Shown here piece by piece: positions 1-55,319 of a stretch of 64,000 nt of DNA. Position numbers and translations under genes: made by a program. This stretch comes from Octopus bimaculoides. Its lineage: Eukaryota. The notes under the pieces were generated by a model, which was not told where the DNA came from, did not search any database, and worked only from the letters and a program-made list of their open reading frames with translations. Location: NCBI RefSeq assembly GCF_001194135.2, contig NC_068983.1:167747529-167811528 (forward strand), written 5' to 3'. How positions within the stretch are numbered: the stretch's first letter is position 1; every line of letters starts with the position of its first letter.

Positions 1-191
1 TTGTGTTCTCTTCTGTATCATGTTTGAAGACTTCAGACTTGGCTGTGAAGGGAGGTTCTGTATGATAGCCTCATCCTGCACACTTTCTAAAAAATGTATT
101 CCTAATTTTGCATTAATCATGAAGGTTTCAAACTCACTCTGTACGTTGCCAGTTTTAACATGTTTTCTTTTTTCTTTCTACATTTCTGCAG

Positions 192-311
192 GTGTTAACC
201 GAGAGGGATTTGATCGAGAGGGTTATGACTTGGCAGGATATAACAGGTATGGATTTGATCATGATGGTTATGATCGGGATGGTTTCAATGTTTCTGGCAG
301 AGATCGTGATG
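192..311 (+). CDS. Exon 1 in window: pentapeptide repeats (GVNREGFDREGYDLAGYNRYGFDHDGYDRDGFNVSGRDRDG)
   Basis: Acceptor tttctgcag|g, phase 1. Probable GC donor GATG|GCAAGT; an in-phase GT donor AAG|GTTAGT at 380 is the alternative. Confidence 0.8.
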
Positions 312-1090
312 GCAAGTTGGACGCTTCTCTTATTTTTGAGAAACAATACTTACAACATAGACATTGTTTAAACAGGAAAGGTTAGTATTGACTATATATA
401 AAAAATTATATGACAAATTTGGGTATTTGTTAGAGTTGCAATTTTAGTTTTGTAAAATTTTAATATTTCATTTACTTTCAGGATTTCTGACTTAAATTCA
501 CAATAACTTTAGTTTAAAGTAAATTTAACTCTTTAAGCATTCCGATTGCTCTGTCAAATGTAATATTTATATTGTTTTGAATGCATCCTGCCTTATCTCA
601 TAGCTTTGAGATTTCGATATGATTACAGTAACATTGGTAGGTGTGAGATGCTAGATCTAGCTGGTTTGAACATAAAACTAATAGAATATTTGAGGCCGGA
701 TATGGCTGGATTAAATGATAAAAGGTTTAACATTAGTGGTTAAGGAAATATCTAATGGATTGCATACAAGAAGAAATGGGGTTAGGAAAATATCTTATTA
801 AGTGTGGGCATGGATCTGTCCTTAAGAAGTTCTCTTTGCAGCCAGGTGGCTTCATGTCCAGTCTCACTGCATGACACCTTGATCCAGTGTCTTCTACTAT
901 GGCTTTGGACCAAACGGTACTTTGTGAGGGAATTTGGTGTATGGATTAAAACCAAGCCCATCATGTCAATCCCACTCGTTCGAATAGACTGGAGATCATT
1001 ACTTCATTTAGAAACAATGAACTGCCAAGACATGAACTGCTGAGCAAACTCATTAAGTGGGGAAATATCAATTCACTTACAAACACTCAT

Positions 1091-1999
1091 ATATCATCAT
1101 CATCATTTAACATCCGCTTTCCATGCTAGCATGGGTTGGACGGTTTGACTGAGGACTGGCGAACCAGATGGCTACACCAGGCTCCAATCTGATTTGGCAG
1201 AGTTTCTACAGCTAGATGCCCTTCCTAACGCCAACCACTCAGAGAGTGTAGTGGGTGCTTTTATGTGCCACCGGCATGAAGGCCAGTCAGGCAGTACTGG
1301 CAACAGCCACACTCAAAATGGTGTCTTTTACGTGCCACCTGCACAGGAGCCAGTCCAGCGGCACTGGCAATGATCTCATTCGAATGTCTTTTTATGTGCC
1401 ACCGGCACAAGTGCCAGGAAGGTAACGCTGGTAGCGATCACACTCAAATGATACTATTTACGTGCCACCGGTACAGAAGCCAGACAGTTGCTCTGGCAAC
1501 GATCACACTCGAATGGTGCTCTTTGCATTCCACTGGTAAAGGTGCCATCACAATTTCGCTTTCGCTTGCCCCAACAGGTCTTCGCAAGCCGAGTTTAGTG
1601 TCCAATGGAGGAGATGTTGGCATGGGTGCCAGTTGTCGAATTTGGTTCGATTTCGATTTCACTTGCCTCAACAAGTCTTCGCAAGCCAAGTTTAGTGTCC
1701 AATGAAGGAAAGGTATGCATAAGTGGGCTGGCTACACCCCTGGCAGAGGCCTCGGATTATGGTCTCACTTGGCTTGCTGGGTCTTCTCACACACAGCATA
1801 TTTCCAAAGGTCTCGGTCACAAGTCATTGCCTCGGTGAGGCCTAATGTTCGAAGGTTGTGATTCACCACCTCATCTCAGGTCTTCCTGGGTCTACCTCTT
1901 CCACATATTCCCTCAACCGCTAGGATGTGACACTTTTTCACACAGCTGTCCTCAGCCATTCTCGCCACATGACCATACCAGCACAATCGTCTCTCTTGC
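1091..1999 (-). mobile_element. RTE-clade LINE 3' fragment (ORF2 C-terminus, 3' UTR, (GAT)n tail), cut by N-gap
   Basis: Minus-strand peptide ERRLCWYGHVARM...GRGRPRKT; begins with catcatcat-ttaacatccgctttccatgctagcatggg, a tail motif repeated many times in the window. Confidence 0.8.
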
Positions 2000-2099
2000 N
2001 NNNNNNNNNNNNNNNNNNNNNNNNNNNNNNNNNNNNNNNNNNNNNNNNNNNNNNNNNNNNNNNNNNNNNNNNNNNNNNNNNNNNNNNNNNNNNNNNNNN
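2000..2099. other. Assembly gap (others at 28644-28871, 33386-33953, ~55295-55304)
   Basis: Runs of N. All are intronic, and exon phases close across them without needing a hidden exon. Confidence 0.98.
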
Positions 2100-2338
2100 T
2101 ATATATATATAATGGTAGAACACCTGTCATATCAACAGGAAATGTGGGTTTGAGTTGCACAGCCTTTGACTTTTTCTATCCAAAATGGTTTTTCAGCCCA
2201 ATATTTATTGGCTATTATTTATAGATTTATGTGCTTCAAGAGCCGCTGTTCAAAAAGAAATTATGTCATGTTCTGTCAAAAAATTTATAAATTTTTGACT
2301 TCAGTAAAAAAAGAAATGTTTTTTTTTATCCATTTCAG

Positions 2339-2581
2339 GTCTTACTAAAGATGGCTATGACCGATATGGTTTTGATATGTATGGATATGATTTAGAAAAC
2401 TGCAATTATTCCTTTAAGGGACCATTTACTACACTGTTGATGCATCGTGTTTGGGAAATTCTTCATACCCAATCGCATGAATTTCTTGTAACTCTGACTA
2501 AAACCTGTCAACCTTTGGAACAACTTCCAAATGTTTGGTATAAGCAATTTTGGATGGAACTCCCTGAAGCATTTGTGGTAG
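2339..2581 (+). CDS. Exon 2: repeats plus CNYSFKGPF module (GLTKDGYDRYGFD...KQFWMELPEAFVVG)
   Basis: Acceptor atttcag|gt, donor G|GTAAGT, phase 1-1; overlaps ORF 2377..2712. Confidence 0.88.
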
Positions 2582-4813
2582 GTAAGTATTTATTTAATGT
2601 TTTCCTTTTATTATTTAATTGTGAAGAATTACATGGAAGCACTCACACAATTATGCTGATGCTTCTAGTGGCCATGAATTGGGAACAGAAAAGGAAATAT
2701 ATCTTATTGTAGCTAAAATTCAATACTTTTGGTAACAAAGCATTGAATAAGTAAAAGAGAATTGAATTCAACAATTATCAGAAAGAAATGACCAATATTC
2801 TTAATTCTATCTCCAAAAATTGAAATGACGCTGAATAAAAATGAAAAGCATTTTTTTTCCTGAATAAGGAATTCTGAATAAGGATGTGCACGCTTTCCAA
2901 GTAAAAATAACTTCTCTGTAGAAGCTGAAAAAAATTGTGTTTTGAAGTTAGAGATGAAATGGCTAAATAGGATTTCTTTGCAGCAGATGTTTATATTAAC
3001 TTTATTGTGTTACCAGATTTGTTTTGAAATATTCTGCCTTGATTTCAATTAATTTGGAGAATAATGAAGAATTTAGTGAAATAACTTTTGTCATCATTAA
3101 GTTCAAAAGAAATGTGGTGTCAAAAAGGTTAAGAGCATCTAGCCATAGAAACTGTGTCACAACAGACAATTGGAGTTTGGACAGCTCTCCAGCCTTGCCA
3201 GCCCCTGTCAAACTGTCCAACTCATGCCAGCATGGAAAATGGACATTAAATGATGATGATGGTAATAATGACATTGTAGTTTCTTTCTTTTTTTTTAATT
3301 AATATGTATCTAAAGAGCTATAGCATATTTTTCAGAGTTTTAATAGAATTATCTGAAAAAATCTCACAACAGTTATTTCGGATGAGTAGAATTCTTTGCC
3401 TAAATCAGAAAGGAAGTTGGTTTAACCTCTTTCATACCAATCCACTTGAGGTGTTCCTTGTTCTATGATAACACAAACTTTCTGTTTTAAAGTGATCTAC
3501 ATTTAAACCTTCCATCAGAATTTCATATTAAGTTTCAATGACAAGTTTGATAATGACAAACTTATCTAACTAAATCCCTTCTTTTTTCAAAGGCAGAGTA
3601 TTTCAACAGCAATATAGTGACTAAAGGACTAAGGATTCATTTTTGCAGGACTCTAATTTCAAGATATCTGTAGCAAGAAACACACTGCAATTACCATATG
3701 TGGTTCTTCTACATTATAGAAATGAAATATAGAATACCAATATGATGCTTGCACATGTTTTATACTGATTTATAAAAGATTTTCTTCAATATTTACTTGC
3801 TAACTTTATGTTTGCCTTTCTCCTGTTGTGCTATTGACCAGCACATCTAGATCACCGATATTGCCACCCAACATCTCTTCTTGCCTTAATCTCACTATCT
3901 ACCCTTACAAGTCTAGGGTGCCCTCCAGCTTTTCTTTCTTATATTACCTTTCACCCACTGCTCCAACCTTCCCTTTTTCTCTAACTCTCCTCCCTTCATT
4001 GCCTCCTTAACTGGAATACTTTCTCTGCATCCACACTGTTCTTCCCCATCTACCTCCTTCATACCCTCCTAGTTCTATTTTCCTTGTTACTTTTCCAGCA
4101 TTCACTTTTCTTTCTCTCTGTCCTCTTCCCCATTTTCTCAGCCTCCTCATCTGGCTACCCTTGTAACACACCACATCTCTCCAGATTCTTTACTACCCTT
4201 GTTTATTTCTTCTATTTTCGTCCCCCTTTCACCATAATCTTCTTTTTCTTTCTTGCCCTTATAAAGTATTTTATTGGACACTCCCACATCACCTTGCTAA
4301 TCTATCCCTACCTTTCTCATTAAACCCTGACTATCTTTGCTTCCCTTGTTTTCTGCCATATTCCATTGTCATGCAGTGTCTGTTAATCTCTGCAGTATCA
4401 CTCTCCTCACAATTATAAATCTATTCCTCTCATCTTCATCCTTTCTCATCAGACACCAAAAAATCATCACACACTCTCCCTTCTAATCTCCTGTTTTAGG
4501 GATTATTTAGGCTCATAGTTTTCCTTGTTGCAAGATGACCTCACTGGGACTGGTACCACAGAAAAAAAGAAAAACCAGTCCACTCTGTAAAATGGTTGGT
4601 GTTAGGAAGGGCATCCAGCTATAGAAACCATACTAAAACAGACAGGGAGCATGGTGCATTTCTCCAATTTGCTGGGTCCAGTTGAACCATGCAAACTATG
4701 CCAGCAAAGAAGGTGGATGCTGATAATGAGGATGAACTTTTTGTTTTGAATAAGTAAAAAACCTTTGATTTCCTTTTAGTCATTGCTACTTTAACAAAGT
4801 TTGTTTTTGTCAG

Positions 4814-5059
4814 ATTTGATCAAGTCGGATGTCCCTCTTCAGCCAGAGAGCAACATTTTGTCTCAAAGAATTTGTTTCCCAATTGAACCATACGTGTCTC
4901 CATGTCCTTGTAATAGAGTTACGACATGTACCATCAATCTCTGTTTGGATGCTGAATGTCCAAGCTATCCCCAAGCCAATTGCTTTGTTGATGTCTGCAA
5001 CGAATGCTCCCCAGTTTGGTACTTGAAAGGAAGGACTGTTGACTGCGAAACGGTCAGAG
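4814..5059 (+). CDS. Exon 3: Cys-rich module (CTINLCLDAECPSYPQANCFVDVCNECSPVWYLKGRTVDC)
   Basis: Acceptor ttgtcag|at, donor AGAG|GTAAGT, phase 1-1. Confidence 0.9.
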
Positions 5060-6275
5060 GTAAGTAACACAAAGAAATAATACCCGGACAATCAAGTGAT
5101 ACAATTTATACCTTGCATCCTGCAGACTCTGTCACCCGAAAAACTAATTTAGGATAAAAGCTTCTTAATTTCACACCAAGATCTTTTTCTAAATTGATTT
5201 TATTATTAAAATATTTGGCACAATTCTTGAAATTTATTTAGATTATTTTGAACAACTAGGATTAATATTTTCTGAAAATGCTTTAAATCATCATTCTATC
5301 ATGAAAATGGTTGAGAAGATCCCAGCAGAAATTAAACTTAGAGCACGAAGAATTGGAAGAAATATAGCAAAGCATTTCTTCCAATGCTCTGATGATTCTG
5401 TTTGCTGACTGCCTTTAGATGACAAATTATCCTGATGTACACAATTGAAACAACGTCGAATTATTATAGCCATCTGTGTACCACATTTAATGTATATATA
5501 TATACTGTTGAAAGCATGATGCTGTAGTGAGTGAAGAGATCTTTACAGACATGTTAAAACACACAATATCTATTGCTACTAAATGGAAATTGTCTTAGCA
5601 GTGACACAGGAGAACACCAGACACATTCTAACCTTCTGAGGCCTTGTCAAGGGTGTGTTCTCGCTCCCACCATGCCTAAATAAAATTATCTCCTTCTGAC
5701 ATATAGGGAACAGGGAGTGATTTATTCATTGATATTGTAGAGAGCTTGCTGAACTGTAAATAAACTCAGTGCATGCAATTGAAACAGCAAATAATCATCT
5801 ACATACATATGTAACATATGTACGGCTATTACAGCTCAGAAAGCTTTCCACAATACCAGTGAATGTGTTATTCATTGTTTCAAAGTATGAATTTTATCTT
5901 GACAAACAGGTGCACAGTATTGACAAACTCTAAGAATTCTGAAACATGTCTGACATTCTTACATGTCACTGTTGAGATAATGTTCACATTGCTCTAACAT
6001 ATTCTGTTTTTAATAAAACTTATCTATGAAGATGTTTTCTCTCAAATAAGAACCACTGCATCATACCTTTCAGTAGTGTATATAAAGATGAACTGTGGTA
6101 CACAGATTATTATAATAATGTTTGTCTGGACTTGCAGGGGTAATAGTGTTTCTTTGAACCTGTCATAGTTATACACCCGCAGCCTCTGTTTTTGCTTCTG
6201 CTGTATCTATACTTAGCCCCAATAACAATTTCTTAGCTTGAGGTTTTTTATACTTTCCTTTCATATTCTTAACAG

Positions 6276-6434
6276 ATTATTGTCATCCAAATCCATGTCA
6301 ACATGGTGCCACATGCATCCAATCTGTGTGGCCTGCAGAACCTTGGTTAGTCTCCTGTAAATGTCCACCTGGTTATGAAGGGGATCATTGCCAGTACAAA
6401 TCAAAAGAAATTTGTTACCTTCCTTTACAGAAAG
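6276..6434 (+). CDS. Exon 4: EGF-like domain (DYCHPNPCQHGATC...CKCPPGYEGDHC) plus start of Kunitz domain (ICYLPLQKG)
   Basis: Canonical six-Cys EGF spacing; acceptor ttaacag|at, donor AAG|GTAAGT, phase 1-1. Confidence 0.93.
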
Positions 6435-6572
6435 GTAAGTCACTTTGTCATGCTCATTGTTCTATGTCATTATTACAGGGTATGACAAAGAAATCAAACC
6501 CTTCCAGATTCACTAGTCTTGATAAAAGTTACAAGATGCAAAATATGGCACCAGTCCAAACTAATAATAACT

Positions 6573-8270: not shown

Positions 8271-8385
8271 TTGTGATAATGATTTTAAATATTTCCTTTT
8301 GCTATCTAAAGTTTTTTTTATACAGTTATTTATCAATTTATAAAGACATAGCTGTAAAAACCCAGCATCATTCTCTCTTTTACAG

Positions 8386-8593
8386 GTTCCTGTTCAAGGA
8401 ATGTGAGTCGTTGGTACTTTGACTTCCATCAATCAAAATGTGTCCAGTTTGACTATTCTGGTTGTGGGGGCAATGCTAATCTATTTGAGACACTTACTGA
8501 TTGCCAGAAAAAATGTGTTGTTGGTGCTTGTTGCTACCGGCAGCAACTTAATCCAGGAGTTACCATTGGCTTTGGGCCTGATGGCTATGATAA
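8386..8593 (+). CDS. Exon 5: rest of Kunitz/BPTI domain (SCSRNVSRWYFD...GCGGNANLFETLTDCQKKC) plus GACC segment
   Basis: Kunitz motifs RWYF and GCGGNxNxFxTxxxC; acceptor tttacag|gt, donor AA|GTAAGA, phase 1-2. Confidence 0.93.
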
Positions 8594-9968
8594 GTAAGAT
8601 TAATTTCTCTAATTGTTTGTTGTATTATCCTTTTAAGCCTTAAGATTTATTTTTGCTCTATCACTAAGGGTTATTCAGCCACTCTTGCATTAGTGTTATG
8701 GGAAAATGCTTGCAGTACATTTTGTGAAACCATTGATGTTAGAGAGGGCATCAAGTTGTAGAAACCAAGTCAGATAACACACTTGAGCAAGCATTTAGTC
8801 TTTGGGATATCTCTCAGATTATGGCAATCCATCCAATCCATGCTAGCATGGAAAAACAAATGTCAAGTGATGTTGATGACAACAATAGTTTCATTTGTGT
8901 GAATATCAGTTAATAAGAAAACTGAAGAGCCGGTAAATTTCCCCCTACCCATGTGAAGTAAACCTGAAATTATAGATACACAAATTTAAGACTCTATAGA
9001 TGGTTGGTGCCTGAGTTTCAAGTTTATATATGGCATAAATTATTGACTTTAGGTTAAATTTTCTTCTGTCTCTGCTACAAGACACTGATGATTCTATTAT
9101 TGTGTTCTGGGTCTCTAACTCTTGCTTGAAGTACTGATGTTTCTATGGATTTTCTATTATTTATTAACTGACAATTACTTAAGCTGATTGAAATTTCAGC
9201 TGCTCATCAGAATGGATTGTTTCACTTGGTTTGAAATTTTTGACAACTTATCTAAGTCAGTCCACGAAAAAAGAATTGAACCTGTAGTCTGCACCAAACA
9301 AATAGTTGGTATGGCTTTGGGGTTAAAAAGATTGCTTCCCAGTCACATGGTTTCAAGTTCAGTCTCACTGTGCAACACCCTGGGAAAATGTCTTCTATAG
9401 TCTTTGGCTGACCAAAGCCTAGTGAGTGTATTTGGTAGATGGAAACTGACTGTTGTGTGTGTGTGTTGTATTGACATCATGCAATAGTTGTAAATAAGTG
9501 CCACTATTATATAAGCAATGTTCTTCATTATCAGTATTCCATGCCATAGAGAAATATTATCTTGCTTGCTAATAGGTGAGGGTTGGTAACAGGAAGGGCA
9601 TCCAGCTGTAGAAAATCTACCTCAATGAATTCCTTGTGACCTGGAAAAGTATATGAGAATGATTAACAGATCAGATGAGAAAGTTGAAAGAATCATACAA
9701 TCTTATTCTTGTCTATGAATCTGTAATTCTGATAATCTGTTTCCTGGTGTGGGAGAGCTGGAGGAGACCACAATAGTGGACTCTCTGGAACTTGTTGAAC
9801 ATAGATGCTCTTATCATTCACCATCCTCTGCAGGGTCAATATAATAAACACCAGTTATACAATGATCCAATTCAAATATATAAATTCCTCTCAAAATTTG
9901 AACCAAAACCCAGTCCAAAGAAATGGAAATAATTAAAATGAATAATTTTCCGAAATTTTGTCTTTCAG

Positions 9969-10078
9969 GTATGGGTTTAATGTAAAAGGTTACAACCAGT
10001 TAAGGAAAATGTTCAATGCGAAAACTGGAATGAAAATGGGAATCAACAGATTCAAGAAGAATGGCTATGATTGGCATG
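9969..10078 (+). CDS. Exon 6: pentapeptide repeats (YGFNVKGYNQ...NGYDWHG)
   Basis: Acceptor tctttcag|g, donor ATG|GTGAGG, phase 2-1, matching both neighbours. Confidence 0.82.
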
Positions 10079-10355
10079 GTGAGGCATTTTACATGTCAGT
10101 TTTAATACATGTATTGTGCATGCATGATGGTGTGTGTGTGTGTGTGTGTGTGTGTGTCTTGACATCAATAAATAGTTGTAAATGAGTATCATCATAAAAG
10201 CAGCGAATTCTATATTTGGTTGTGATTCTTTTGTAAATGAGAAGGCTTCATGTTTCATTTATCTTATTAGAATAAATGATGGTGGATAATTATATTTAAA
10301 AAAAAAAAAATTTCCTATTTCTTGCCTGTATAAAGATTTTTCAAAGTGTAAGATA

Positions 10356-10406
<51 letters not shown>
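10356..10406. repeat. (ATT)n microsatellite
   Basis: Directly visible pure tract. Confidence 0.95.
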
Positions 10407-10408
<2 letters not shown>

Positions 10409-10699
10409 CAGAGACCCTGATTATACATACTTGACGTTATGATGATGATAATCATAAAAATAATGATGAGCTTGGGCATCCAGCTGTAGAAGTTTTGCAA
10501 AAGCAGACATTGGACCTCATTGCAGTCCTCTGGCATGTCAGATTCTGCTGAACCATCCAACCCATGCCAGCCTGGAATGTGGATAGTAAATGATGATGAT
10601 ACTCAGGTGCACTAAAACTCATCAGAAAGAGGTAAAAGAGGGGACAGAAAGACAACAACAATAGCCAAAATTACATGTATAGTAGACAGAATGAAATAT

Positions 10700-11130
10700 T
10701 AAAAAGGGAACGTTAAATGAGCCCTAAAGGAGAAAGAATGTCTAGACACATCAGGAGTAATGTTGAAGAGCCTAGAATTTTTGAAGGGTGCCATGTCCTA
10801 ATGGCTAATAACAAAAGCTGGTAGTTTATTCCATGCTTTAACAATTCTGAGTATGAACAAAATCTTTCTGAAAGTTATGGGTGAGGTGTTGTTCTTCGAT
10901 TTAATGAGCATGTTCAACAGAGATAATGGATTTAAAAAGAGGACCAAAATTATTGTTGGAAAGGTAACGGATAATCTTCTTGTGGGATTCTACCAAGTCA
11001 TTTATCTATACATTGTTGAAACTTTAGTGCGTCAATGCTCAGAGAAGCAAGATATTGAAAATATGGTAAGTGACTGTTGGAGAGTTTGTCTCCAGGATGA
11101 ATATCTCTGCAAAGATTAAAAGACAATCAG
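10700..11130 (-). mobile_element. CR1/L2-like LINE ORF2 C-terminal relic
   Basis: Minus-strand translation LRIVKAWNKLPAFVI matches the RxVxxWNxLP terminal motif; interrupted by stops. Confidence 0.55.
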
Positions 11131-11412
11131 TTTAACATAGCTTCTGTCAACCCTTTTCTTATCATATTTCTGTTGAGATGCTCTATGCTTCTTTCAATTA
11201 ATTTTAAATATAACAAACAATTTAGTATAATAACTTAGTTATCATTAAGCTAGTGATAGGAACATAAATTGTGACTAAGGTTTGGTGGAAGATTTTAATT
11301 CAGAACTTTTGAAAGCAAGACATTTGTACTACAAAGCCAGAGGTGGTTTCAAGTGGGTTGGTATCAAAAGGGTTAATCCACTATAGTTTCTGTTAATCTT
11401 ATACGGTTTTGT

Positions 11413-11650
11413 GGAGGTGCATAGCCTAGTGGTTAGGGTGTTGGACTTGTGACCGTAAGATTGTGGTTTCAGTTCCTGGACTGGGTGATGCATTGTGTTC
11501 TTGAGCAAAACACTTCAGTCCACTCAGCTGGTAAAAATGCATCTCTGGATGGGATGCTGGTCCTGTGACGGACCAGCATCCCATCCAGAGAGGAATATAT
11601 CTAGATCAGAGAAACCAGGAGGCTGGTCCTTCTGTTCCCTATTGACTAAC
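11413..11650 (+). mobile_element. tRNA-headed SINE copy
   Basis: A-box-like TAGCCTAGTGG, degenerate B-box GGTTTCAGTTCC, followed by a SINE body; no complete cloverleaf. Confidence 0.6.
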
Positions 11651-11727
11651 TTTTCAGTTTTAGCTTTTATCATGAAGCAATTTTGTTTCTTTCTGATCTG
11701 TGAATACCAATGGTTTCTCTGTTGCAG

Positions 11728-11893
11728 GTTATGACAAAAATGGATTCAACTCTGTTGGTTATAATAGACTAGGCTACAATTCTGAAGGTTATGATCCATT
11801 CGGATTCAACATGACGGGATATAGCAGAGAAGGTGAGTTTGATGGCATGATCGACTATGATGATGATGGCTACGATGAAGAAGGTTATAACAG
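11728..11893 (+). CDS. Exon 7: pentapeptide repeats (GYDKNGFNSVGYNRLGYNSEGYDPFGFNMT...GYDEEGYNR)
   Basis: Acceptor gttgcag|gt, donor CAG|GTGAGA, phase 1-2. Confidence 0.88.
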
Positions 11894-14793
11894 GTGAGAT
11901 TTTTTATTATTATTTATTGTTTTTGTTTTCATCATCATTGTTTTAATGTCTGTTTTTCCATACTTGTATGGGTTGGATGGAATTTGTTGAGGCACATATT
12001 CTTTGACCCGATGCCCCTTCTATTGCCAACCCTCACCTGTTTGTAAGCAAAGTTTATTTTCCTGATAGCCAAACAGGTTTTTCACAGAAGACTGAAAACA
12101 AACAACATTGCCTGTACGACAGTGATGCTCATTTACAACTATCACAAGATGTCAAGACAAGGTACAAACTCTCCCTCTCCCTCACACACACACAAGCTCA
12201 TGTACAAACCACAAACAAGGCAATAAATGAAATCCTGTCTCTGAAGGAGGTAGTGACAGTGTTTCCTATCAACGGTTAGTGTATAGGAAGGTTCATTCGA
12301 GAATTTGGTAAGTTTTGTTGCTATGAGAAGTGAAGAATCTAACATTTTTGGTAGTTGCACTTTGTTGGGTGAGGAAGAGAGGGGCAGGTGTAACTGTCAT
12401 TTTGGTTCAGAACATTGTACGAAGTAAGGAAAAACCTGGCACTGTCATTTTGGTTACAATAGTGAGAGTTGCTGTTGATCCAATCAACTAAACTGCTTGC
12501 TCATGAAACTGACATGGAAGTGGCTGAGTACTCCAAAGACATGTGTGTGTCCTTAATGTAGATTTCAGGGAGATTTGGTGACACCCAGAATGTGACAAGG
12601 CTGGTCGTTTGAAATATAGGTACTACTCATTTTCACCAGCTGAGTGAACTGGAATAATGTGAAATAGAGTGTCTTGCTGAAGGCTACAACACATCACCAG
12701 GTATTGAACTCATGACCTTACGATCGTGAACTGAATACCCGAACCCTTCAGCCCTGCACAGCAGGATGAAGGTTGGCTAGGGTTAGGGTTAGGGATATGG
12801 ATGTGCAACGTGGCAAAAGCCTGGATTCTGTGATTAAGAAGTTTGTTCCACATCCACATGACTTCAGGTTCAATACCACTGTATGGCACTTTGGATCAAC
12901 GTCTTCAGCTTAAGTTGCATTGGGATGGAAACTATGGACATCCAGTGTGTGTGTGTGTAAATGTTTGTCTCCATGTTGATACAGCTGGGGCAGTGGTGAT
13001 GTTTACAGCATTGCTACATGAACAGCACACTCTCTGACTTGAGTTGTTATGGTGTGTGAAGATCAGCAGAATAAAATATACCTACAAAAATTAAAAAAAT
13101 AAATAAATAAGGGTCACTGGCAAGAGAGGCATTCAGCCATTAGAATACTGGCTCAGTAAGTCTCTTCTAACTGATGCAGGCATGGAAAAAGTGGATGTAA
13201 AGATGATGGTATTGTCAGTGGGGATTACATATTATCCAATTCTGTGCATTAAAATTAATACCAAAGATCAAAATAATTAAACCAAAAATCAAAACTCCAT
13301 TAACTCAAGGCTCACTAAGCAATGAGGATTAAAATATATGCATAGTTAATATGCTTATGTACATTCGAAGCTGGTGATTCTCACTGCAGAAATCTCTCAG
13401 GTGAGAGATTCTCTATATTTCAATCAACACTGCCTAGTGTGCTTCTAATTAATTAATTCTAGCTTGACAAAGATTTGCATACATCAGCAAATGTAGTATT
13501 TACTGTTTAAGAATTGTAGTTCTTAATGGGTTGTGAACAGTGGATTCAGTTTCTCTGCTGATGAAGCACAACAATGCCAAAATACACAGCTTACAGTCTA
13601 ATGATGTCATTGATAGCCCATTGATGTGGGTTTTCACACACTTTGTCTGTGAAGGAGAACTTCTCTCCTGAAATAATTTCCTCAGTAAAGGTCTTTTCAT
13701 GTCTGCATGTACACAAATGGGTTAAATATAATTGTACACACCTATATTTGAATCAACGCTGCTTGGTGCTCCTCTAGAAAATTAATCTCAGCTTGTCAAA
13801 ATTTTGCACACATCAGCAAATTTCCTATTTTGCTGTTTAAATATATAAAATATATAAATGGTAGTTCTTAGAGGACTGGGAATAATGGAATCGGTATCCA
13901 TGGTTAAATAGATGAAGGATCAAACTTGTGGATAAGATGCAAATTTATCACTAATAACATTTCCAGAATAAATATAATTCCTGATATCTGTTCTTCAAGG
14001 AAAGTGAGGTAATAAAGAATTAAGAAGCCTGGGGGCACATACTTGCATGTACATAGACACAACGTACAGATTAGGATAAAGGGAGTTAAGTTATTCTTTT
14101 TTTTTTTCCTAGTCCAGTTAATTCAAAATGTAAGTTGACAAGAATCACCAGGTTTTCCTTTTCAGTTTCTTTGCATTTTCCCATTGGTTGTCATTTATTC
14201 AAATCATAACAAATTTTTTATAATCTTTTGGGGTTGTAACTTGAGATAAAATTGCATTTTAATAAAAAGAAATGATGAGTCAAATGATTACATAAAATCA
14301 CAGAATATCATTCTTATTTTGCCTAATTTCTCACCTGCATCACTCATTTCTATCACAATTTTGAAGTAATAATGTCTGATTGATGAAAAATATGTAAGGT
14401 GATGCCAGCAAATAAAAATATAGAGGAAGATGATATATTAGCGTATGTTAGTTATTTAGTGATCCTATAATATTTTGAGAAAGGTTCCCCTTTCAAAAAA
14501 TATTAAAAAAAAGAATAGAGTTCAAACAAAATATATTGTTACCTGCCAGCCATTTTGGTAGCCTTCTAAATGCCAATTATTTAATTTTGAGTCTCGTTAC
14601 TGGCAGGCCATTAGAATGTCCTGCTATTCAAAATTATATTAATTGGCAGGAAAAGCTAAGTTAACTTTAACCTAACTAAGATACCATTACTCTAAATCCA
14701 TTCTATATCAGTGTATATGTGATGGAATGTTGTGATGTAAAATAAAATTGATTCAAACAGATTAAGGAAACTTATTTCTGTTTCTTTTTACAG

Positions 14794-16569
14794 AGCAGGG
14801 TTCAATTGTGAAGGTGTTAACCGAGATGGTTTGGATATTTATGGACGTCATGCTGGCTTCAAGTATTCTTGCATAAGAACCACAAGGAAAAGGTGTCGAC
14901 ATTTGGAAACTGAAGATGATGTTCAAATTGTTCGTTTTTCTCCAGGGAAAAAATGTGAAGATGTCAGTTGCAAGCCAAATTGTATGTGTTGGTTTAATAA
15001 TGAATTCCATAGGATTTGGGATAATTTCAATGTAGGCTGTGAGAAATTTCAGTGTCACTTGGGAGGGTTTTCACAAATGAATTCTTGTCAAAAACATTTT
15101 CAACGCAAAGAGATTCGTGACATGAGTTTTGATGAAATGAAGCGTTACCAACTTGTTATCCAGAATCTACAGCATGAAAAAAGAAACGGTAAATCTGTGT
15201 GGTATGAATTTGCTGAAATGTATTCAGAATATATTCCTCAAGCTTCAGGAAATCCTTTATTTTTGCCATGGCACCGCTACTTTTTGTTTATGGTTGAAAA
15301 GTCGATGCAAGATGTTGAATGTGGTGTTGTGATCCCATATTATGATTGGACCCTTGATATTGGTGTCTTGAATAAATCAGTTATTTGGTCATCCAAATAT
15401 TTTGGTGGTAATGGTGAAAATGGAACAGATTGTGTCAGATATCATCCATTTAAGTCTTATCATCCACCATATTGGACCCCTTGTCTCCGTAGACACTTCA
15501 ATTCTTCCGTACATCTTCCAGACGCAATTCATGTTTATTTGGCTATACAGGAAAGTACCTTTAGTGATTTTTCAGCTTACATGGAATCAATGCTGCATCT
15601 TTTCCAGATGTGGGTTGGAGGTCACATGAACTCACCTCTCAGTGCTTACGACCCCCTTTTCTATTCACATGTAGCTTTTATTGATAAACTCTGGGATGAT
15701 TGGCAGAGGAGTCATAAGAAAGGTTTGCTGCGATTTCCTCTTAATTTTCGATATGTTCCTATGGAACCTTTCAAAGTTAGCCCTGACGATGTATTAGATT
15801 GCAAAAAACAAATCTGTATAACCTATCTGAATTTACCATTTGGGTCACCATGTAACCAGACCAAAATAAAGACCTTTGGATATGGTAGTGATAGTTATGA
15901 TCGTCATGGCTTTGATAAAAATGGTTATGATAAAGATGGATTTGATGTCCATGGAATAAACATTGATGGCTATATTGATCTCAGAGGAATATATAATAAC
16001 GAGGGATTTGACAAAGAAGGATTTTCTAGACAAGGTTTTGATAATATGGGCTATGACAGAGATCTCTTTCACGAAGACGGTTACAATCCTGATGGCTTTG
16101 ATGTTGCTGGCTATGACAGATCTGGTCATAATAGATATGGTTCCAGCAGAATCAAAACGAATGTCTTTAGTGAACATGTTTCTACATTCAGAAAGAATGA
16201 GTTCAATGAACTTGGATTAAATAACTTGGGTTTTAATAACAAAGGCTTTGACATTTTTGGTTTTGACAAGGATGGATTCAATCGCTTTGGTTGCAATTAC
16301 TATTTCAATGGCCCGTTTTATATAATCATATACCAGTCACTTAAGAATAAACTTAGCGAGATAAAATCCATGCATTCTTTGATCAATATCCCAAGGTTGT
16401 GTCCTGCAGTGTCGCAGCTTCCTCATTGGATGTATAAAGTTTATTGGTTGAACCGGCAAAAAACCATTCCAGAAGTTTTAGCAATCATGGCTCTGGACAG
16501 ACTGAAAAATCCTTATTCATTTGAAGATGTCTTTGACAAAATTTGGATTCCTCCTGTTCCTGATCATAG
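14794..16569 (+). CDS. Exon 8 (1,776 nt): Cys-rich segment, tyrosinase/type-3 copper domain (~15104-15830), pentapeptide repeats (~15878-16294), CNYYFNGPF module
   Basis: ORF 14831..16573 contains RKEIRDMS, FLPWHR, IPYYDW, YFGGNG, CLRR, WVGGHM and DPLFYSHVAFIDKLW. Acceptor tttacag|a, donor AG|GTAAAC, phase 2-2. Confidence 0.95.
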
Positions 16570-16917
16570 GTAAACAATAACAATTTTCATTTATTGATTT
16601 TCTAAAAAAAATTTATTAATTCTATACTGACCAATTCCCTGCTCTGTCTGTGTGTGTGTGTACACATGCGTGTGCTTTGCACACATTTTACAGCTTTTAC
16701 AACTAGTGGACAGAGGGAAAAAAAAATGTGTGCACACAAGGTCTTCAAGATGAAGTCAGATTTCTAAAATTGAAGAGGGTTATTCAATTCACAATGAAAT
16801 TCAATATTTCTGCACAAGTAAATTTTTGTGCTGAAAATTTGAACATTAATTGTGACTGATATTTGTATTTGTTTAACAATTTTCATTTCTCTAATTTTAA
16901 TTGTGTTAGTTTATATA

Positions 16918-17630: not shown

Positions 17631-18499
17631 ATGGCTTGTAGAAAGGCATTTCAAGTGAGTGGATAAGAGAAGTGATATCACTAAGGGTGATGAATGTATC
17701 AATGGCTTCAAAGTTTGGCTCAAGGCCAACAATTTTAGGGGTCAGGGGCAAGTCAAATCCAGTACTTGACTACCTGAAAAGATGAAAGGCAAAGTCAGCC
17801 ATGATGGAATTTGAACTTAGAATGTAAAGATCTGGAAGAATTGCTGTCCATTACATTAACAATTTTGCTAACTTGTCACCTTAATAATAATAACATAATG
17901 ATAATAATAATAATAATGATGATATCTCAAACTATATGTAAAGGAAGCACATGTTACTGATGAGCCTGTTTCTTCTCTCTGCTTCTTCTATTTCTACTTC
18001 TCTTGGCCCTATTAACTAGCGCACGTCATAACCTCAAATTCACTAGGTTCCCTATTTACATCTTCTCCTCACTCCTATAATACCACATTAGTTTATTTAT
18101 AAAACACCAAATGTTTTGTATGACCATTTCTTCCTTTCAGCTCTATGAAATTCTCTTTCCACCTGTTTTTCTTGGACTATTGACCAACCGAATTTATAGA
18201 TTAAACATTAGCTATATCAGTCTTAAAGTGCTCCTCTATCTGTGTCTAATTCATGAAAAGAAGGTTAGTAGTGTAGATTTCAGATATGTGAATAGTGTTC
18301 TATAGTGAAACATACTTTATTTTTCATAAAGAATTAGCCATATAAATTCTGAAGAAGAATCTTTGTGATTTAATTTTGTCTGAATTTTCTTGAGAATCCT
18401 TAAGAGTCAATATCTATTTATGCTTCAAATTGTTTCAGCTATTTATCAATATAGATCCTTAAGGATCAATATCTGTGATATTTATTCTGCATTTTTCAG

Positions 18500-18594
18500 G
18501 TTTTGTTTGGAAACAAACTTCTTTTCAAAATGTCCCTTAGGTCATGCTCCTGTTAAATGTTCATCAGATTTGTGCTTTGATACGATTTGTCCGG
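18500..18594 (+). CDS. Exon 9: first half of second Cys module (RFCLETNFFSKCPLGHAPVKCSSDLCFDTICPG)
   Basis: Acceptor ttttcag|g, donor CCGG|GTAAGA, phase 2-1; aligns with exon 3. Confidence 0.88.
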
Positions 18595-19381
18595 GTAAGA
18601 TTCATTCATTTTTTATATTGTTATTTTTAATTCAAATATATTATATTTTTTTAAAACAATCTTCCATTCTCTATAACATTTCAATTTCTCATTTTCATAT
18701 AGCTTCACCTGGGTTATATTCATGTGTTTTCAATAAGGCATTACTATATATATATCATCATCATCATCATCATCTTTTAATGTCCATGTTCCATGCTTAT
18801 AGATTTGACAAAATAGAGATTTTGCTTTGGATAATTTTTCATTCTAATAAAAATGTTTCAAGTGAGTGACTCTGATATGAGTTTTGAGCTTTCAAGCAGC
18901 CGTTTCCAAACTGGAAAATGTATGTTTTGCTGGTTGCTTAAATAGCAAAACTATTTTTTCTTACAAGTATACACACAAACAAAAAATATACACAAAAAGA
19001 GGAAAAATATATAAAAAATACAAAAGCATGTGCACAGAAGGTGAAGAAGGGGGAAAAACAAGTAAATGAAAGAAAGATAAAAATAAAGATAAGAATAACA
19101 ATAAGACTTTTAGTAATTGAAAACAGAGGAGAAAGGAAAGTTAAGTCCCTTAAGAACACAGAAGTGGAATATTTTGGAGTGATCAATATTGTGAATTGTC
19201 AAAAGATTTGAGGTCACATGTTCAGCTCTCACACATGGTATGGTGTGTGTATATGTATGTACACACATATTTATACCAGTATATGAACATGCCTCCCAAC
19301 CCCCATACCCATACAAGCACACACACACACATATGCATACAAACATGTGTACACACACATGTATATATATATATATATATA

Positions 19382-20270
19382 CAGAGGTTGGACAAAATAA
19401 TGGAAACACCTTAAAATTTCAAACAAATTTATTTTAATATGAGGTAGGACCGCCTTTGGCAGTAATTACAGCTTGAATTCTACGAGGTATGGACTTGTAT
19501 AAAGTTTCAATTGTTTCCAAAGGAATTTTTGTCCATTTTCCAGCTAAAACAGTCTCTATTTATTATAGTGATGGTGGTGGAGGATATCGACTCCTTACTT
19601 GTTTTTCTAAAGTGCACCATAAATGTTCAATAATATTGAGATCTGGGGACTGTGGTGGCCAGATAAGATGTTCAACTTCACTAGAATGTTCCTCGTGCCA
19701 TTCAGTAACAGCTTTAGCTGTGTGAATTGGTGCATTATCATTCTGAAAGATTGCGTTTCCCTCCAGAAACAGTTCTGCAACCATAGGATGATCAGATAAA
19801 TTGCTTAAATAGTCTTGACTAGCAATTTTGCCATGAAGGGAAACCATTGGGCTGGCCCCGCCAGATCATCACAGATCTTCCTCCATGTTTAACTGTTGGA
19901 AAAAGGCAGTCTGGATCAAATGCTTCTCGTCCCATTATACATACATTCATACATACGCACATACATATGTACATACATACATACATACGTACGTACGTAC
20001 ACACACGTACGCACATATATACAATGGACTAACTGTTATTTTCTCAGATGCAGCACAGAATTTTGTCAGTGAACAGGTCGCGGTCTCAAAGCGATGAAAT
20101 ATTTTGGCAAATTAAATTTAAATGTTGAAGTGAATCTAACGGTTTTTGTGTGTTATTTTGAATGGCTTCTAAACACCTTCCACGCTGCAATTGTTTTTGT
20201 TCCAGCACACGATCTCAGATCAAGTCACTTGCTATGCAAGTACATCTCCAATTGCAAAGATAACCTGGAA
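19382..20270 (-). mobile_element. Tc1/mariner DNA transposon relic (DDE transposase pseudogene) with one terminal repeat
   Basis: Minus peptides PTVKHGGRSVMIW and FQNDNAPIHTAK...WPPQSPDLNIIEHLW; TA followed by CAGAGGTTGGACAAAATAATGGAAACACC at 19380. Frameshifted and split by a (TACA)n tract at ~19940-20020. No second TIR found. Confidence 0.85.
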
Positions 20271-21155
20271 CTCGACTGAGGAAAGAAAACTCTGAATGAC
20301 CCATCCTTGTTTTCTTTGTATCGTCTATCTGGATGTTTTGTTGTCCCTTTCTTGTATCACCTAACTGTCTGGATGTTTTGCGTTCTTGTCCCATTGTGTA
20401 TTTATATATATATATATATATATGCTCACACTCAAATACACATATGATGAGCTTCTATAGATTTTCTGTTTACCAATTCTGTCTGCAACCTTAACCATGC
20501 TATCATAGTTGCTTAGAGATGAAATTGTCAATTCAAAACTATTTAAAATCTACCTCAGCAACTGTGTGTCCACATAAGTGTGTTTAACAAATGGAGCATA
20601 GAAAAGAAATTTCCAATCTTGGATGAGTTTTAAGCATGGATTAAATTTGTATTAATAAATATGTTTTGTTGTCTAGAAATCATCATGATTGTTTTAATGT
20701 CCACTTTTCTATGCTTGCATGGGTCAGACAGAATTTGTTGAGGCAGATATTTTACTGTCAGATGTACTTGTTTTCCCCAACCCTGATCAGTTTCCAATCA
20801 AGGTAATATTTCCCCATGGCAAGGCATGTTTTTCCTGGACGACTGGAAGTGAGCAACATCACTTATATGACAGTCATGCTTATCTATAAACATTATGTGA
20901 TGTCAAGAAAAAAGATACACACACACACACACATGTATACATGATAGGCTTCTTTCAGTTTCTTCTCACAAAGTTTTGCTTCACCTTGGGCAGAAGATAC
21001 TTTGTCCAAGGTGTCATGCATTAGGACAGAACTGATACCATTCGCTTGCAAAGCAAACTTCTCAACTACACTGCCATGTTTGTACTAATATAATCTCTAT
21101 AATACAGATAATGTTTTTTTTTTCTAAAACATTTGAATTTGTTTCTTGTTTCTAG

Positions 21156-21248
21156 GTATATCTGGTGCCATATGCCGAGTGAACTATTGTGGGACCTGTT
21201 CGGTTGAATGGTATGATGCTCGCTCTGGTGATTTTGTAGAATGCCAAG
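21156..21248 (+). CDS. Exon 10: second half of Cys module (GISGAICRVNYCGTCSVEWYDARSGDFVECQG)
   Basis: Acceptor tttctag|gt, donor AAG|GTACTT, phase 1-1; completes the Cys spacing seen in exon 3. Confidence 0.88.
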
Positions 21249-21304
21249 GTACTTTGAAATAATAGCTTTAGCTAGATGAAACTGTGGAAAAAAGGTTTTG
21301 TTTA

Positions 21305-41524: not shown

Positions 41525-42790
41525 TGTAGAAACTAGGGATTGACGAATGGTTAATAAGGGCTGTACAGGCCCTATATAGAGATGCCATTAGTAAGGTTAG
41601 GGTTGGCAATGAGTATTGTGAAGAATTCCAGGTAGAAGTAGGGGGTCTACCAAGGATCAGTCCTGAGCCCCCTCTTATTCATCATAGTCCTCCAGGCAAT
41701 AACAGAGGGATTCAAGACAGGTTGGAGCATACTGGTTTCATTTCTTTCAAGTCTTTGCATATCCTCAGTAGTCACAGCCCATGTCTCACTGCCATATAGC
41801 ATAGGTGTCTGTAAATGGGCATGATACAATCTGCCTTTCAGTCTGATGGAGAGGCCCTTCATTACTAACAGAGGTAGTAGCTCTCTGAACTTCACCTGGC
41901 CTATTCTTATTCTAGCAGCTATGCTTTCAGAACAACCTCCCCCACTACTAACTTGGTCCCTAAGTAATGGAAGCTATCTACTACTTCTAGGGATCTCCCC
42001 CTGGCATATGAGAGTCTATTTTTTATGTATTCCTGGTGTTTAATGAATCCACACATCTGCCACATGTAAAGATTACCCTCTCCTTTAGTTGCTCTGTTCT
42101 ATTGCTGCACCTCTTATGTGTCCATAGCTTGCACTGGATACATCTTATGGAGTTTGTCCCAACACCTTTTCTACATATTGAGCAGGGCCATCTCCCTGGA
42201 GGGATCTGCAATTTGTTGTTTTCTTACTTATCAATACTTTGGCCTGTACTAAATTAACTCTAAGGCCCTTTGATTACAGTCTGTGCTTCCATACCTGAAA
42301 TTTCTTCTCTAGTTCTGGTAGTGATTCAGCAGTGAGAACAAGGCCATCTGCATAGAGAACCTCCCAAGGGCAGGTAATCTTATATTCCTCAGTTATAGCT
42401 TGGAGGACTATGATGAATAAGTGGGAGCTAAGAACTGAACCCTGGTGGATTCCTACTTGTACACTAAACTCCTTGCTATATTCATTGGTGACTCTCATCT
42501 TACTAACAGCCTCCCTATACATGGCTTGGACAGCTCCCACTAATCACTGATCTATCCCTTGTTTCTGCCCACCAAATAAGAGAGCAGGGCACCATGCCAA
42601 AGGCTTTCTCCATGTCAACAAAAGCCTGAAAAGGGGGGTTTTTTTGCCCAAGTATTTCTCCTGCAGTTGCCTCATCAGGAAGATAGCATCAGTGGTGCTT
42701 CTCCCTGGCACAAATCCAAACTGCATCTCATCTGTGCTAACTCTCTTCTTAATTAATTGAGCAGACATAAAACAATGATGATGATGATGT
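41525..42790 (-). mobile_element. RTE LINE fragments: short + strand RT piece (41525-41715) next to a longer - strand piece with RT and intact-spacing PHD-type finger
   Basis: Plus piece KLGIDEW...QGSVLSPLLFIIVLQAIT; minus ORFs 42274..42540, 42023..42211, 41647..41895, 42544..42819 match the 21-24 kb copy. Confidence 0.8.
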
Positions 42791-55275: not shown

Positions 55276-55319
55276 GCTGTGCGTGAGAAGACACNNNNNN
55301 NNNNTATATATATATATAT

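Follow-up and report, generated by a model that had tools for sequence, protein, structure and literature searches.

To our knowledge, relatives of the type-3 copper proteins that have lost their copper are textbook material only for the arthropod hexamerins, which are free hexameric storage proteins of the arthropod hemocyanin/prophenoloxidase branch with separate Pfam domains. Here we describe a tyrosinase-like domain of the cephalopod Octopus bimaculoides, at positions 15104–15829 of a 64,000-nucleotide stretch of genomic DNA (NCBI RefSeq assembly GCF_001194135.2, contig NC_068983.1, positions 167,747,529 to 167,811,528 of the forward strand), referred to below as the window. The domain is predicted to have lost five of its six copper ligands, is encoded within a giant gene of the 'kielin/chordin-like' type, and is likely a pseudo-enzyme. 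Positions are counted from the first nucleotide of the window, and all exons of the gene described are on its forward (+) strand.

The ligands of the canonical enzymes are well defined. In the tyrosinase of Streptomyces castaneoglobisporus, CuA is held by His38, His54 and His63, and CuB by His190, His194 and His216 (PMC6312201). Every type-3 centre requires three histidines per copper, spaced as H1-(n)-H2-(8)-H3 at CuA and H1-(3)-H2-(n)-H3 at CuB, and the third CuB histidine has a Phe at -4 and an Asp at +4 (PMC3658974). The vertebrate TYRP1 and TYRP2 keep all six histidines and have zinc bound (PMC3658974, PMC10113262).

We found no description of a copper-less tyrosinase, or of a Kielin protein with a tyrosinase domain, in the searchable literature, save for one remark in a survey of lophotrochozoan tyrosinases, where sequences of >3,000 amino acids with kielin/chordin-like domains are mentioned as very long outliers (PMC11667028). 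Kielin/chordin-like proteins are also reported in a preprint to be the most abundant class in the eggcase matrix of Argonauta, with no link made to the gene described here (bioRxiv 10.1101/2021.07.10.451900). The sequences themselves are public and automatically annotated; the novelty lies in identifying an ancient, duplicated cassette as pseudo-tyrosinase and in tracing an intact counterpart of it to choanoflagellates.

Identity and predicted fold of the domain

The window is animal genomic DNA of ~36% G+C with introns. The domain is encoded in a single long coding exon (14794–16570; 592 open codons in frame 14795+3n) that forms the second tyrosinase-like cassette of the gene and is bordered by a splice acceptor (...ttttacag, at ~14793) and a donor (16570|gtaaac). 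The exon is collinear with residues 1262-1856 of an Argonauta hians 'kielin/chordin-like protein', with 84.7% identity. The tyrosinase-like domain itself comprises exon residues 104-345 and matches the Pfam family PF00264 (Tyrosinase) over profile positions 2-213 of 214, with E=2.8e-24 and a score of 87.1 bits (gathering threshold 22.6). PF00264 is the sole Pfam family matched in the exon, and the best sequence matches in the PDB (phmmer) are mollusc hemocyanin functional units, with Streptomyces tyrosinase 1wx2 at E ~1e-23; with only PF00264 present, and with tyrosinases and mollusc hemocyanin units as best matches, the exon lies outside the arthropod-hemocyanin type.

An AlphaFold2 (AF2) model of the domain, built with 16 family sequences, has a mean predicted local distance difference test score (pLDDT) of 84.9 and a predicted template modelling score (pTM) of 0.87. 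Its top Foldseek match is 1wx2_A, the Streptomyces tyrosinase (E=1.6e-12; template modelling score, TM, 0.77), and Bacillus tyrosinase is matched with TM values up to 0.82. The six ligand positions fall in the model on the expected helices (model residues 36-46, 57-75, 157-175 and 188-207) and on the loop that leads into the second of them. The region 15104-15829 is clearly a homologue within the tyrosinase superfamily, and is predicted to have kept the four-helix-bundle fold together with conserved cysteines.

Relatives were surveyed by scanning a profile of the family over 1.8 billion representative proteins, followed by name look-ups. The family consists of giant proteins that NCBI pipelines label 'kielin/chordin-like protein', with named members in Argonauta hians (3,774 amino acids), Lingula anatina (4,190 amino acids), Limulus, Tachypleus, the shark Hemiscyllium (3,102 amino acids), Branchiostoma, the crinoid Anneissia and the teleosts Hypomesus and Arapaima. 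Further relatives or fragments come from Ptychodera, Elysia, Patella, Macrobrachium, krill, a spider and the teleosts Esox, Lates, Osmerus and Metynnis.

Copper-ligand positions

The register of the ligands is taken from four agreeing alignments, one made with HMMER against hemocyanin functional units and three with MAFFT against canonical tyrosinases, one of which sets the window against Streptomyces MelC2, numbered as S. castaneoglobisporus tyrosinase. Counts given below out of 101 canonical sequences and out of 34 family members come from a family-profile alignment (hmmalign) anchored by motif; this alignment misplaces some canonical sequences and its counts of 4-5 histidines in distant sequences are unreliable, and the canonical comparison rests on MAFFT.

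At CuA, the MAFFT alignments place Tyr143 (15221–15223) at the first ligand, His38, where Tyr is found in 24 of 29 members of the family, and both methods place Ser151 (15245–15247) at the second, His54, which is mostly Val in the family. The third, His63, corresponds in the MAFFT alignments to His160 of the FLPWHR motif (15272–15274), and this is the sole ligand kept; eight residues separate it from Ser151, as the H2-(8)-H3 rule demands. In the family this position is His in 22 of 30 members and Asn, Ser or Gln in the other 8, the motif reading WQR in the pike (Esox).

At CuB, HMMER and MAFFT alike put Leu267 (15593–15595), Gln271 (15605–15607) and Val293 (15671–15673) in the columns of His190, His194 and His216 respectively. 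The first of these positions is never His in any family member, being occupied by a small or hydrophobic residue; the second is Gln, His, Lys or Arg; and the third is hydrophobic, and never His in domains of the window type. Two histidines lie immediately beside these columns. His268 (15596–15598) is the equivalent of the non-ligand Asn191, a position at which 25 of 101 canonical sequences, and only 4 of 34 in the family, have histidine. His292 (15668–15670) is the equivalent of the non-ligand His215, which is His in 95 of 101 canonical sequences, beside the ligand His that follows it, and in 10 of 34 family members. In the segment DPLFYSHVAFID the His at 15668 is thus aligned to His215 and the Val at 15671 to the ligand His216 of Streptomyces tyrosinase, and the Phe289 and Asp297 present there bracket Val293, not His292. 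Since these stand at -4 and +4 of Val293, the register is fixed, with Val293 and not His292 in the CuB-3 position.

Compared with the motifs of a functional type-3 centre, CuA has only its H3, and CuB has Leu267, Gln271 and Val293 in place of its three histidines. On these alignments five of the six copper ligands have been lost from the domain, the six positions reading Tyr, Ser, His, Leu, Gln and Val. The residues quoted in an initial annotation of the window, made from its sequence (Tyr 15221, Ser 15245, His 15272, Leu 15593, His 15596, Gln 15605 and His 15668), are all found in place, as are the fold motifs and the open reading frame that it noted; the frame stays open for 592 codons between acceptor and donor. 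That ligands have been lost is borne out, but the count of four out of six was too low, five being given by the four alignments: the His at 15668, in a DPxFxxH motif, had been taken as a ligand kept, although the ligand column is occupied by the Val at 15671, and the His at 15596, read as a ligand shifted by one, occupies the Asn191 position.

The domain also carries a histidine that canonical enzymes do not share. All 34 family members have this residue, His217, in the motif CVRYHPF (15443–15445); of the canonical sequences 72 of 101 have Gly there, as do all choanoflagellate domains examined. The comparison indicates that His217 was gained along with the loss of the ligands.

Conservation and selection

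A protein search yielded ~30 full-length relatives with 34-61% identity. In one MAFFT alignment CuB-1 and CuB-3 are without His in 30 of 30 family members, while canonical homologues have all six histidines in 12 of 12, and the loss is therefore not due to chance. Over ~35 relatives from molluscs, a brachiopod, arthropods, an echinoderm, a hemichordate, amphioxus, a shark and teleosts, the CuB-1 His is absent in all, and the CuB-3 His is absent too in all relatives of the window's own domain type. Annotated proteins sharing the ligand loss are those of Lingula, Ptychodera, Limulus, shark, amphioxus, crinoid and teleosts.

The six ligand columns carry identical residues in the Argonauta hians orthologue, and the domain, with 87.6% identity between the two species, is the best-conserved portion of the exon. 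In comparison with a relative of 61% identity, the one for which DNA was available, the domain shows a nonsynonymous divergence (dN) of 0.21, against 0.33 for the remainder of the exon; the proportion of synonymous differences (pS) is 0.77, at which synonymous sites are saturated, such that only dN and the contrast between regions are usable. These patterns of substitution point to strong purifying selection acting on a domain that appears unable to bind two coppers.

Choanoflagellate counterparts and origin of the cassette

The tyrosinase-like domain of the family is part of a larger cassette, present in two copies per protein, with the order EGF, Kunitz, G[FY]D repeats, small Cys-rich domain, tyrosinase-like domain, G[FY]D repeats, a helical 'CNY' domain and a Cys-rich domain. 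The window domain belongs to cassette 2, and the window starts in the tail of cassette 1. The cassette is also found in Salpingoeca rosetta PTSG_11343 and 'mantle protein 9' (EGD75879), in S. urceolata and in other choanoflagellate sequences, where the order is Kunitz, G[YF]D repeats, small Cys-rich domain, tyrosinase, PPCN, G[YF]D repeats, a C..GP.Y..C.PL..LP.WW domain and a CPPG..CGGC domain; the Kunitz domain lies 5' of the tyrosinase domain in S. rosetta PTSG_11343 and PTSG_12389. Most of these choanoflagellate proteins have all six ligand histidines, and all examined have the Gly at the HPF position. From choanoflagellates to fish, G[FY]D-x-x pentapeptide-like repeats flank every tyrosinase or tyrosinase-like domain of the family.

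The choanoflagellate proteins are the nearest relatives of the animal domains both by profile score and in a neighbour-joining (NJ) tree, in which the animal clade is sister to the choanoflagellate clade. Bootstrap values out of 100 are 98 for the animal domains, 99 for the cassette-1 type, 87 for the cassette-2 type, and 92 for animals plus choanoflagellates against the fungal and bacterial enzymes. Domains of cassette 1 have lost the CuA-1 and CuB-1 histidines; CuB-3 persists in some species (Lingula, Ptychodera, Patella) and is gone from Argonauta, amphioxus and the crinoid.

The simplest reading of these sequences is a history in three steps for the bilaterian genes. An active ancestral cassette, as in choanoflagellates, would have come first; it would then have been inactivated, with a common loss of CuB-1 and, in most members, the change of CuA-1 to Tyr; and the cassette would have been duplicated before the protostome-deuterostome split and subsequently kept under purifying selection.

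Two other sequences from the survey are of note. A Hartaetosiga balthica protein (P0231) shows an independent loss of three ligands (HYHHSF). A short ENA fragment (P0095), perhaps from an active protein of the cassette type, combines a canonical CuB site (HxxxH..HH) with GYD repeats after it.

Role of the domain

We consider it likely that the window domain is a copper-free pseudo-enzyme that was inactivated before the bilaterians diverged and has been kept as a structural or binding module. Five ligands are lost and three histidines are required per copper (PMC3658974), and the domain is therefore predicted to be incapable of forming a binuclear centre, of phenol oxidation and of O2 binding. 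A binding or structural role is plausible, and the dead domain could serve as a rigid interaction or scaffold module in an extracellular, BMP/TGF-beta-modulating VWC protein. The flanking Tyr/Phe-rich G[FY]D repeats may once have been the substrate of the ancestral enzyme. Our preferred guess is that aromatic side chains still dock in what was the substrate pocket, in which case the module would be a non-catalytic 'reader' that organises or cross-bridges the protein.

Several points weigh against this account. The docking of aromatic residues by the dead domain is purely conjectural, and the pLDDT of ~80 in part of the repeats hints at ordered packing without showing any contact. The phylogeny is a simple NJ tree, computed on an alignment fitted to the family profile. 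The family-profile protein scan identified no cnidarian, sponge or ctenophore family member, and the inactivation is therefore dated only to before the bilaterian ancestor. The initial annotation had likewise proposed a pseudo-enzyme under selection for a non-catalytic role, and this proposal is well supported by the bilaterian-wide loss, the 87.6% identity to Argonauta, the dN of 0.21 and the confidently predicted fold. The precedent that it drew from hexamerins holds as an analogy, but these belong to a different branch, that of the arthropod hemocyanins and not of the tyrosinases.

The domain might instead bind a metal at a remodelled, probably mononuclear site composed of His160 together with His217, His277 of the WVGGHM motif, Glu264 and Tyr143, and have a structural, redox or sensing role. 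The invariance of His217 (34/34, where canonical enzymes have Gly), the Tyr at CuA-1 in 24/29, and the retention of His277 in 30/34 and Glu264 in 29/34 are in keeping with such a site, and TYRP1 and TYRP2 show that tyrosinase folds can carry other metals (PMC3658974, PMC10113262). We nonetheless regard it as unlikely: His160 gives way to Asn, Ser or Gln in 8/30, including the WQR of Esox; except for His217, no set of at least three potential ligands is invariant across the family; and His277 and Glu264 are common in canonical enzymes too, and so are not new. The initial annotation had offered a mononuclear site using nearby His/Tyr residues; the histidines at 15596 and 15668 are at ordinary non-ligand positions (His in 4/34 and 10/34 of the family) and do not sustain it. 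That these same off-by-one histidines would allow the domain to remain a phenol oxidase or an oxygen binder is very improbable. They do adjoin lost ligand positions, but they are the normal Asn191 and His215 equivalents, which are occupied in active enzymes also, a shift of one residue on a helix rotates the side chain ~100 degrees off the site, their conservation in the family is poor, and CuA would in any case have one ligand only. As substitute ligands, the shifted histidines at 15596 and 15668 were ruled out by their non-ligand alignment positions and by this poor conservation.

The explanation that the substitutions are assembly or sequencing errors, or that the exon belongs to a decaying pseudogene, is scarcely credible. 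Runs of N do exist in the window (2000-2099, 28644-28871, 33386-33953 and 55295-55304), but all are intronic and none is in the tyrosinase-like exon, which has its 592 open codons and good splice sites. The ligand-column residues are moreover identical in the independent Argonauta hians assembly, the pattern is family-wide and extends across phyla, and dN is low despite saturated synonymous sites; these cross-species data rule out both an assembly error and a pseudogene. The initial annotation had listed assembly errors seen in raw reads among what would refute it; the same six residues in the Argonauta orthologue speak against such errors. On a larger scale, an ancient holozoan 'self-tanning' cassette, in which an active tyrosinase was flanked by its own Tyr-rich G[YF]D substrate and accompanied by Kunitz and Cys-rich domains, and which choanoflagellates would still have intact, may have been captured by the Kielin/KCP lineage of BMP modulators and turned early in animals into a copper-free reader of aromatic residues, with tetrapod KCP losing the cassettes later. 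We hold this extended scenario to be doubtful; if it is true, machinery for matrix cross-linking was recycled for the control of morphogen gradients.

The family represents an independent and much older case of ligand loss, in the tyrosinase branch, occurring twice per protein and extending from molluscs to sharks and teleosts, and the active-looking choanoflagellate forms make it a natural before-and-after pair for experiments. The invertebrate and fish 'kielin/chordin-like' giants carry large uncharacterised modules, namely the tyrosinase-like domain, the G[FY]D repeats and the CNY domain, which may be relevant to the modulation of BMP/TGF-beta or to how the matrix is assembled. Counts of 'tyrosinase genes' by Pfam domain will wrongly score these domains as enzymes.

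Organization of the host gene

Over 29 tblastn blocks of 57-89% identity the window follows residues 820-3219 of the Argonauta hians protein GAB1599713.1 collinearly, and corresponds to the middle of the gene. By Pfam the Argonauta protein contains 20 VWC repeats, two tyrosinase-like domains, the first at residues 528-769, and one VWD domain; its N-terminal region is thrombospondin-N-like as judged by eye. The window ends at about residue 3219 of the 3774 in the Argonauta orthologue, and the VWD domain is present in both that protein and the shark protein. The sequence comparisons identify the host as a giant secreted protein of the Kielin type in its cephalopod orthologue, with the window domain the second of its two tyrosinase-like domains. 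A contig of another species (ENA ERZ26696836) contains two tyrosinase-like exons, one of the cassette-1 and one of the cassette-2 type (loci L002 and L003), 9.7 kb apart on one strand, and the two-cassette layout of the gene is therefore confirmed in another species.

At the left end of the window is the tail of cassette 1 (179–5070), whose G[FY]D repeats (179-382), CNY domain (2326-2607) and Cys-rich domain (4819-5070) align by tblastn with Argonauta residues 820-1053; the tyrosinase-like domain of this cassette is upstream of the window. These are followed by an EGF-like exon (6266–6436; Pfam PF00008, E=5.6e-7; 81% identity to the Argonauta protein) and a Kunitz/BPTI exon (8385–8594; Pfam PF00014, E=1.6e-16; 80% identity to Argonauta residues 1103-1172), which opens cassette 2 and runs into its first G[FY]D repeats (8560-8594). 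The EGF-like and Kunitz/BPTI exons are thus placed between the two cassettes. Two short G[FY]D-repeat exons (9967-10080 and 11709-11894), with 84-89% identity to Argonauta residues 1172-1264 by tblastn, lie 5' of the tyrosinase-like exon, spanning 9967–11894.

The tyrosinase-like exon itself opens with the end of a G[FY]D repeat and a small Cys-rich, beta-rich mini-domain of VWC/FnI-like appearance (14795–15103), directly 5' of the tyrosinase-like domain. Its strands are predicted at exon residues 64-95 with pLDDT ~57-75 (AF2), Pfam and PDB sequence searches with it gave no match, and its counterpart in S. rosetta PTSG_11343 has a weak Pfam match to FnI_RECK. On the 3' side the tyrosinase-like domain is followed by pentapeptide-like G[FY]D repeats (15830–16291), recognised from the sequence, part of which reach pLDDT ~80-85 with little regular secondary structure in an AF2 model of the whole exon. 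Pfam and PDB sequence searches with the repeats also gave no match; they do match repeat regions of many unrelated bacterial proteins (annotated DUF6273, TrbI/VirB10, DZANK and others), with E values from 1e-41 to ~1e-6. The exon is closed by the CNY domain (16292–16570), named for its pattern CNYY..GP.Y..C.P...LP.W, which is predicted by AF2 to be helical at exon residues 502-567, has no match in Pfam or PDB sequence searches, and is kept from choanoflagellates to fish.

Beyond this exon, the post-cassette Cys-rich domain is split between two exons. The first half, in the next exon (18498–18608), was located by tblastn with the Elysia, Esox and Argonauta proteins and as an open reading frame (ORF), and the second (21155–21259), with the motif ..CRVNYCGTC..W.D.., by tblastn. 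This domain has the pattern C..C.G.P.A.C..N.CG.C..W.D, has no Pfam match, and is conserved down to choanoflagellates. The right part of the window is occupied by ~20 further exons of the gene, which encode tandem VWC (chordin-type Cys-rich) repeats (25166–63622), corresponding by tblastn to Argonauta residues 1918-3219, with Pfam PF00093 matches on the VWC exons tested between 27393 and 59897.

The introns contain degraded retrotransposon remnants at 22073-23678 and 42026-42223, both on the minus strand, which include a reverse-transcriptase ORF (Pfam RVT_1, E=7.8e-10) and two copies of a Cys-rich zinc-finger-like ORF (..WPCSICRKG.G.NSIRC.QCKLW..KRCS..). Microsatellites of the (TG)n/(CA)n type are common in many introns (e.g. 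19113-19465, 27695-27969 and 29193-29551) and appear as 'CVCVCV' pseudo-ORFs in a six-frame scan.

Comparison with known systems

The window domain shares with the secreted (alpha-subclass) tyrosinases, such as Streptomyces MelC2 (1wx2) and the Bacillus megaterium enzyme, its membership of PF00264, its predicted fold (TM 0.77-0.82) and second-shell motifs, namely RKEIR, FLPWHR, an IPYWDW-like motif, WVGGHM and DPxF...D. It differs from them in the replacement of five of the six ligands, in its extra conserved cysteines, in an invariant His where the enzymes have Gly, and in being embedded in a protein of >3,000 residues and not standing alone. The choanoflagellate cassette proteins have Kazal or other domains in place of the long VWC array of the window gene and, as judged from their sequences, look catalytically competent.

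Among multi-domain proteins, the host gene resembles Kielin/KCP and the multi-VWC modulators of BMP in its long tandem array of VWC repeats, to which the Argonauta orthologue adds a C-terminal VWD domain; this likeness is one of architecture and of pipeline names. We know of no tyrosinase-like, Kunitz or G[FY]D cassettes in the tetrapod Kielin/KCP proteins described.

Departures from copper chemistry within this superfamily take more than one form. TYRP1 and TYRP2 are like the window domain in having a tyrosinase fold whose chemistry departs from copper-dependent oxidation of tyrosine, but they retain the ligands that the window domain is without. The arthropod hexamerins, pseudo-hemocyanins and cryptocyanin are like it in combining a type-3 copper fold with lost ligands and a non-catalytic role that has been kept. 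The loss in hexamerins is independent of that described here, and the window domain, in contrast to them, sits within a mosaic matrix protein and belongs to the tyrosinase branch.

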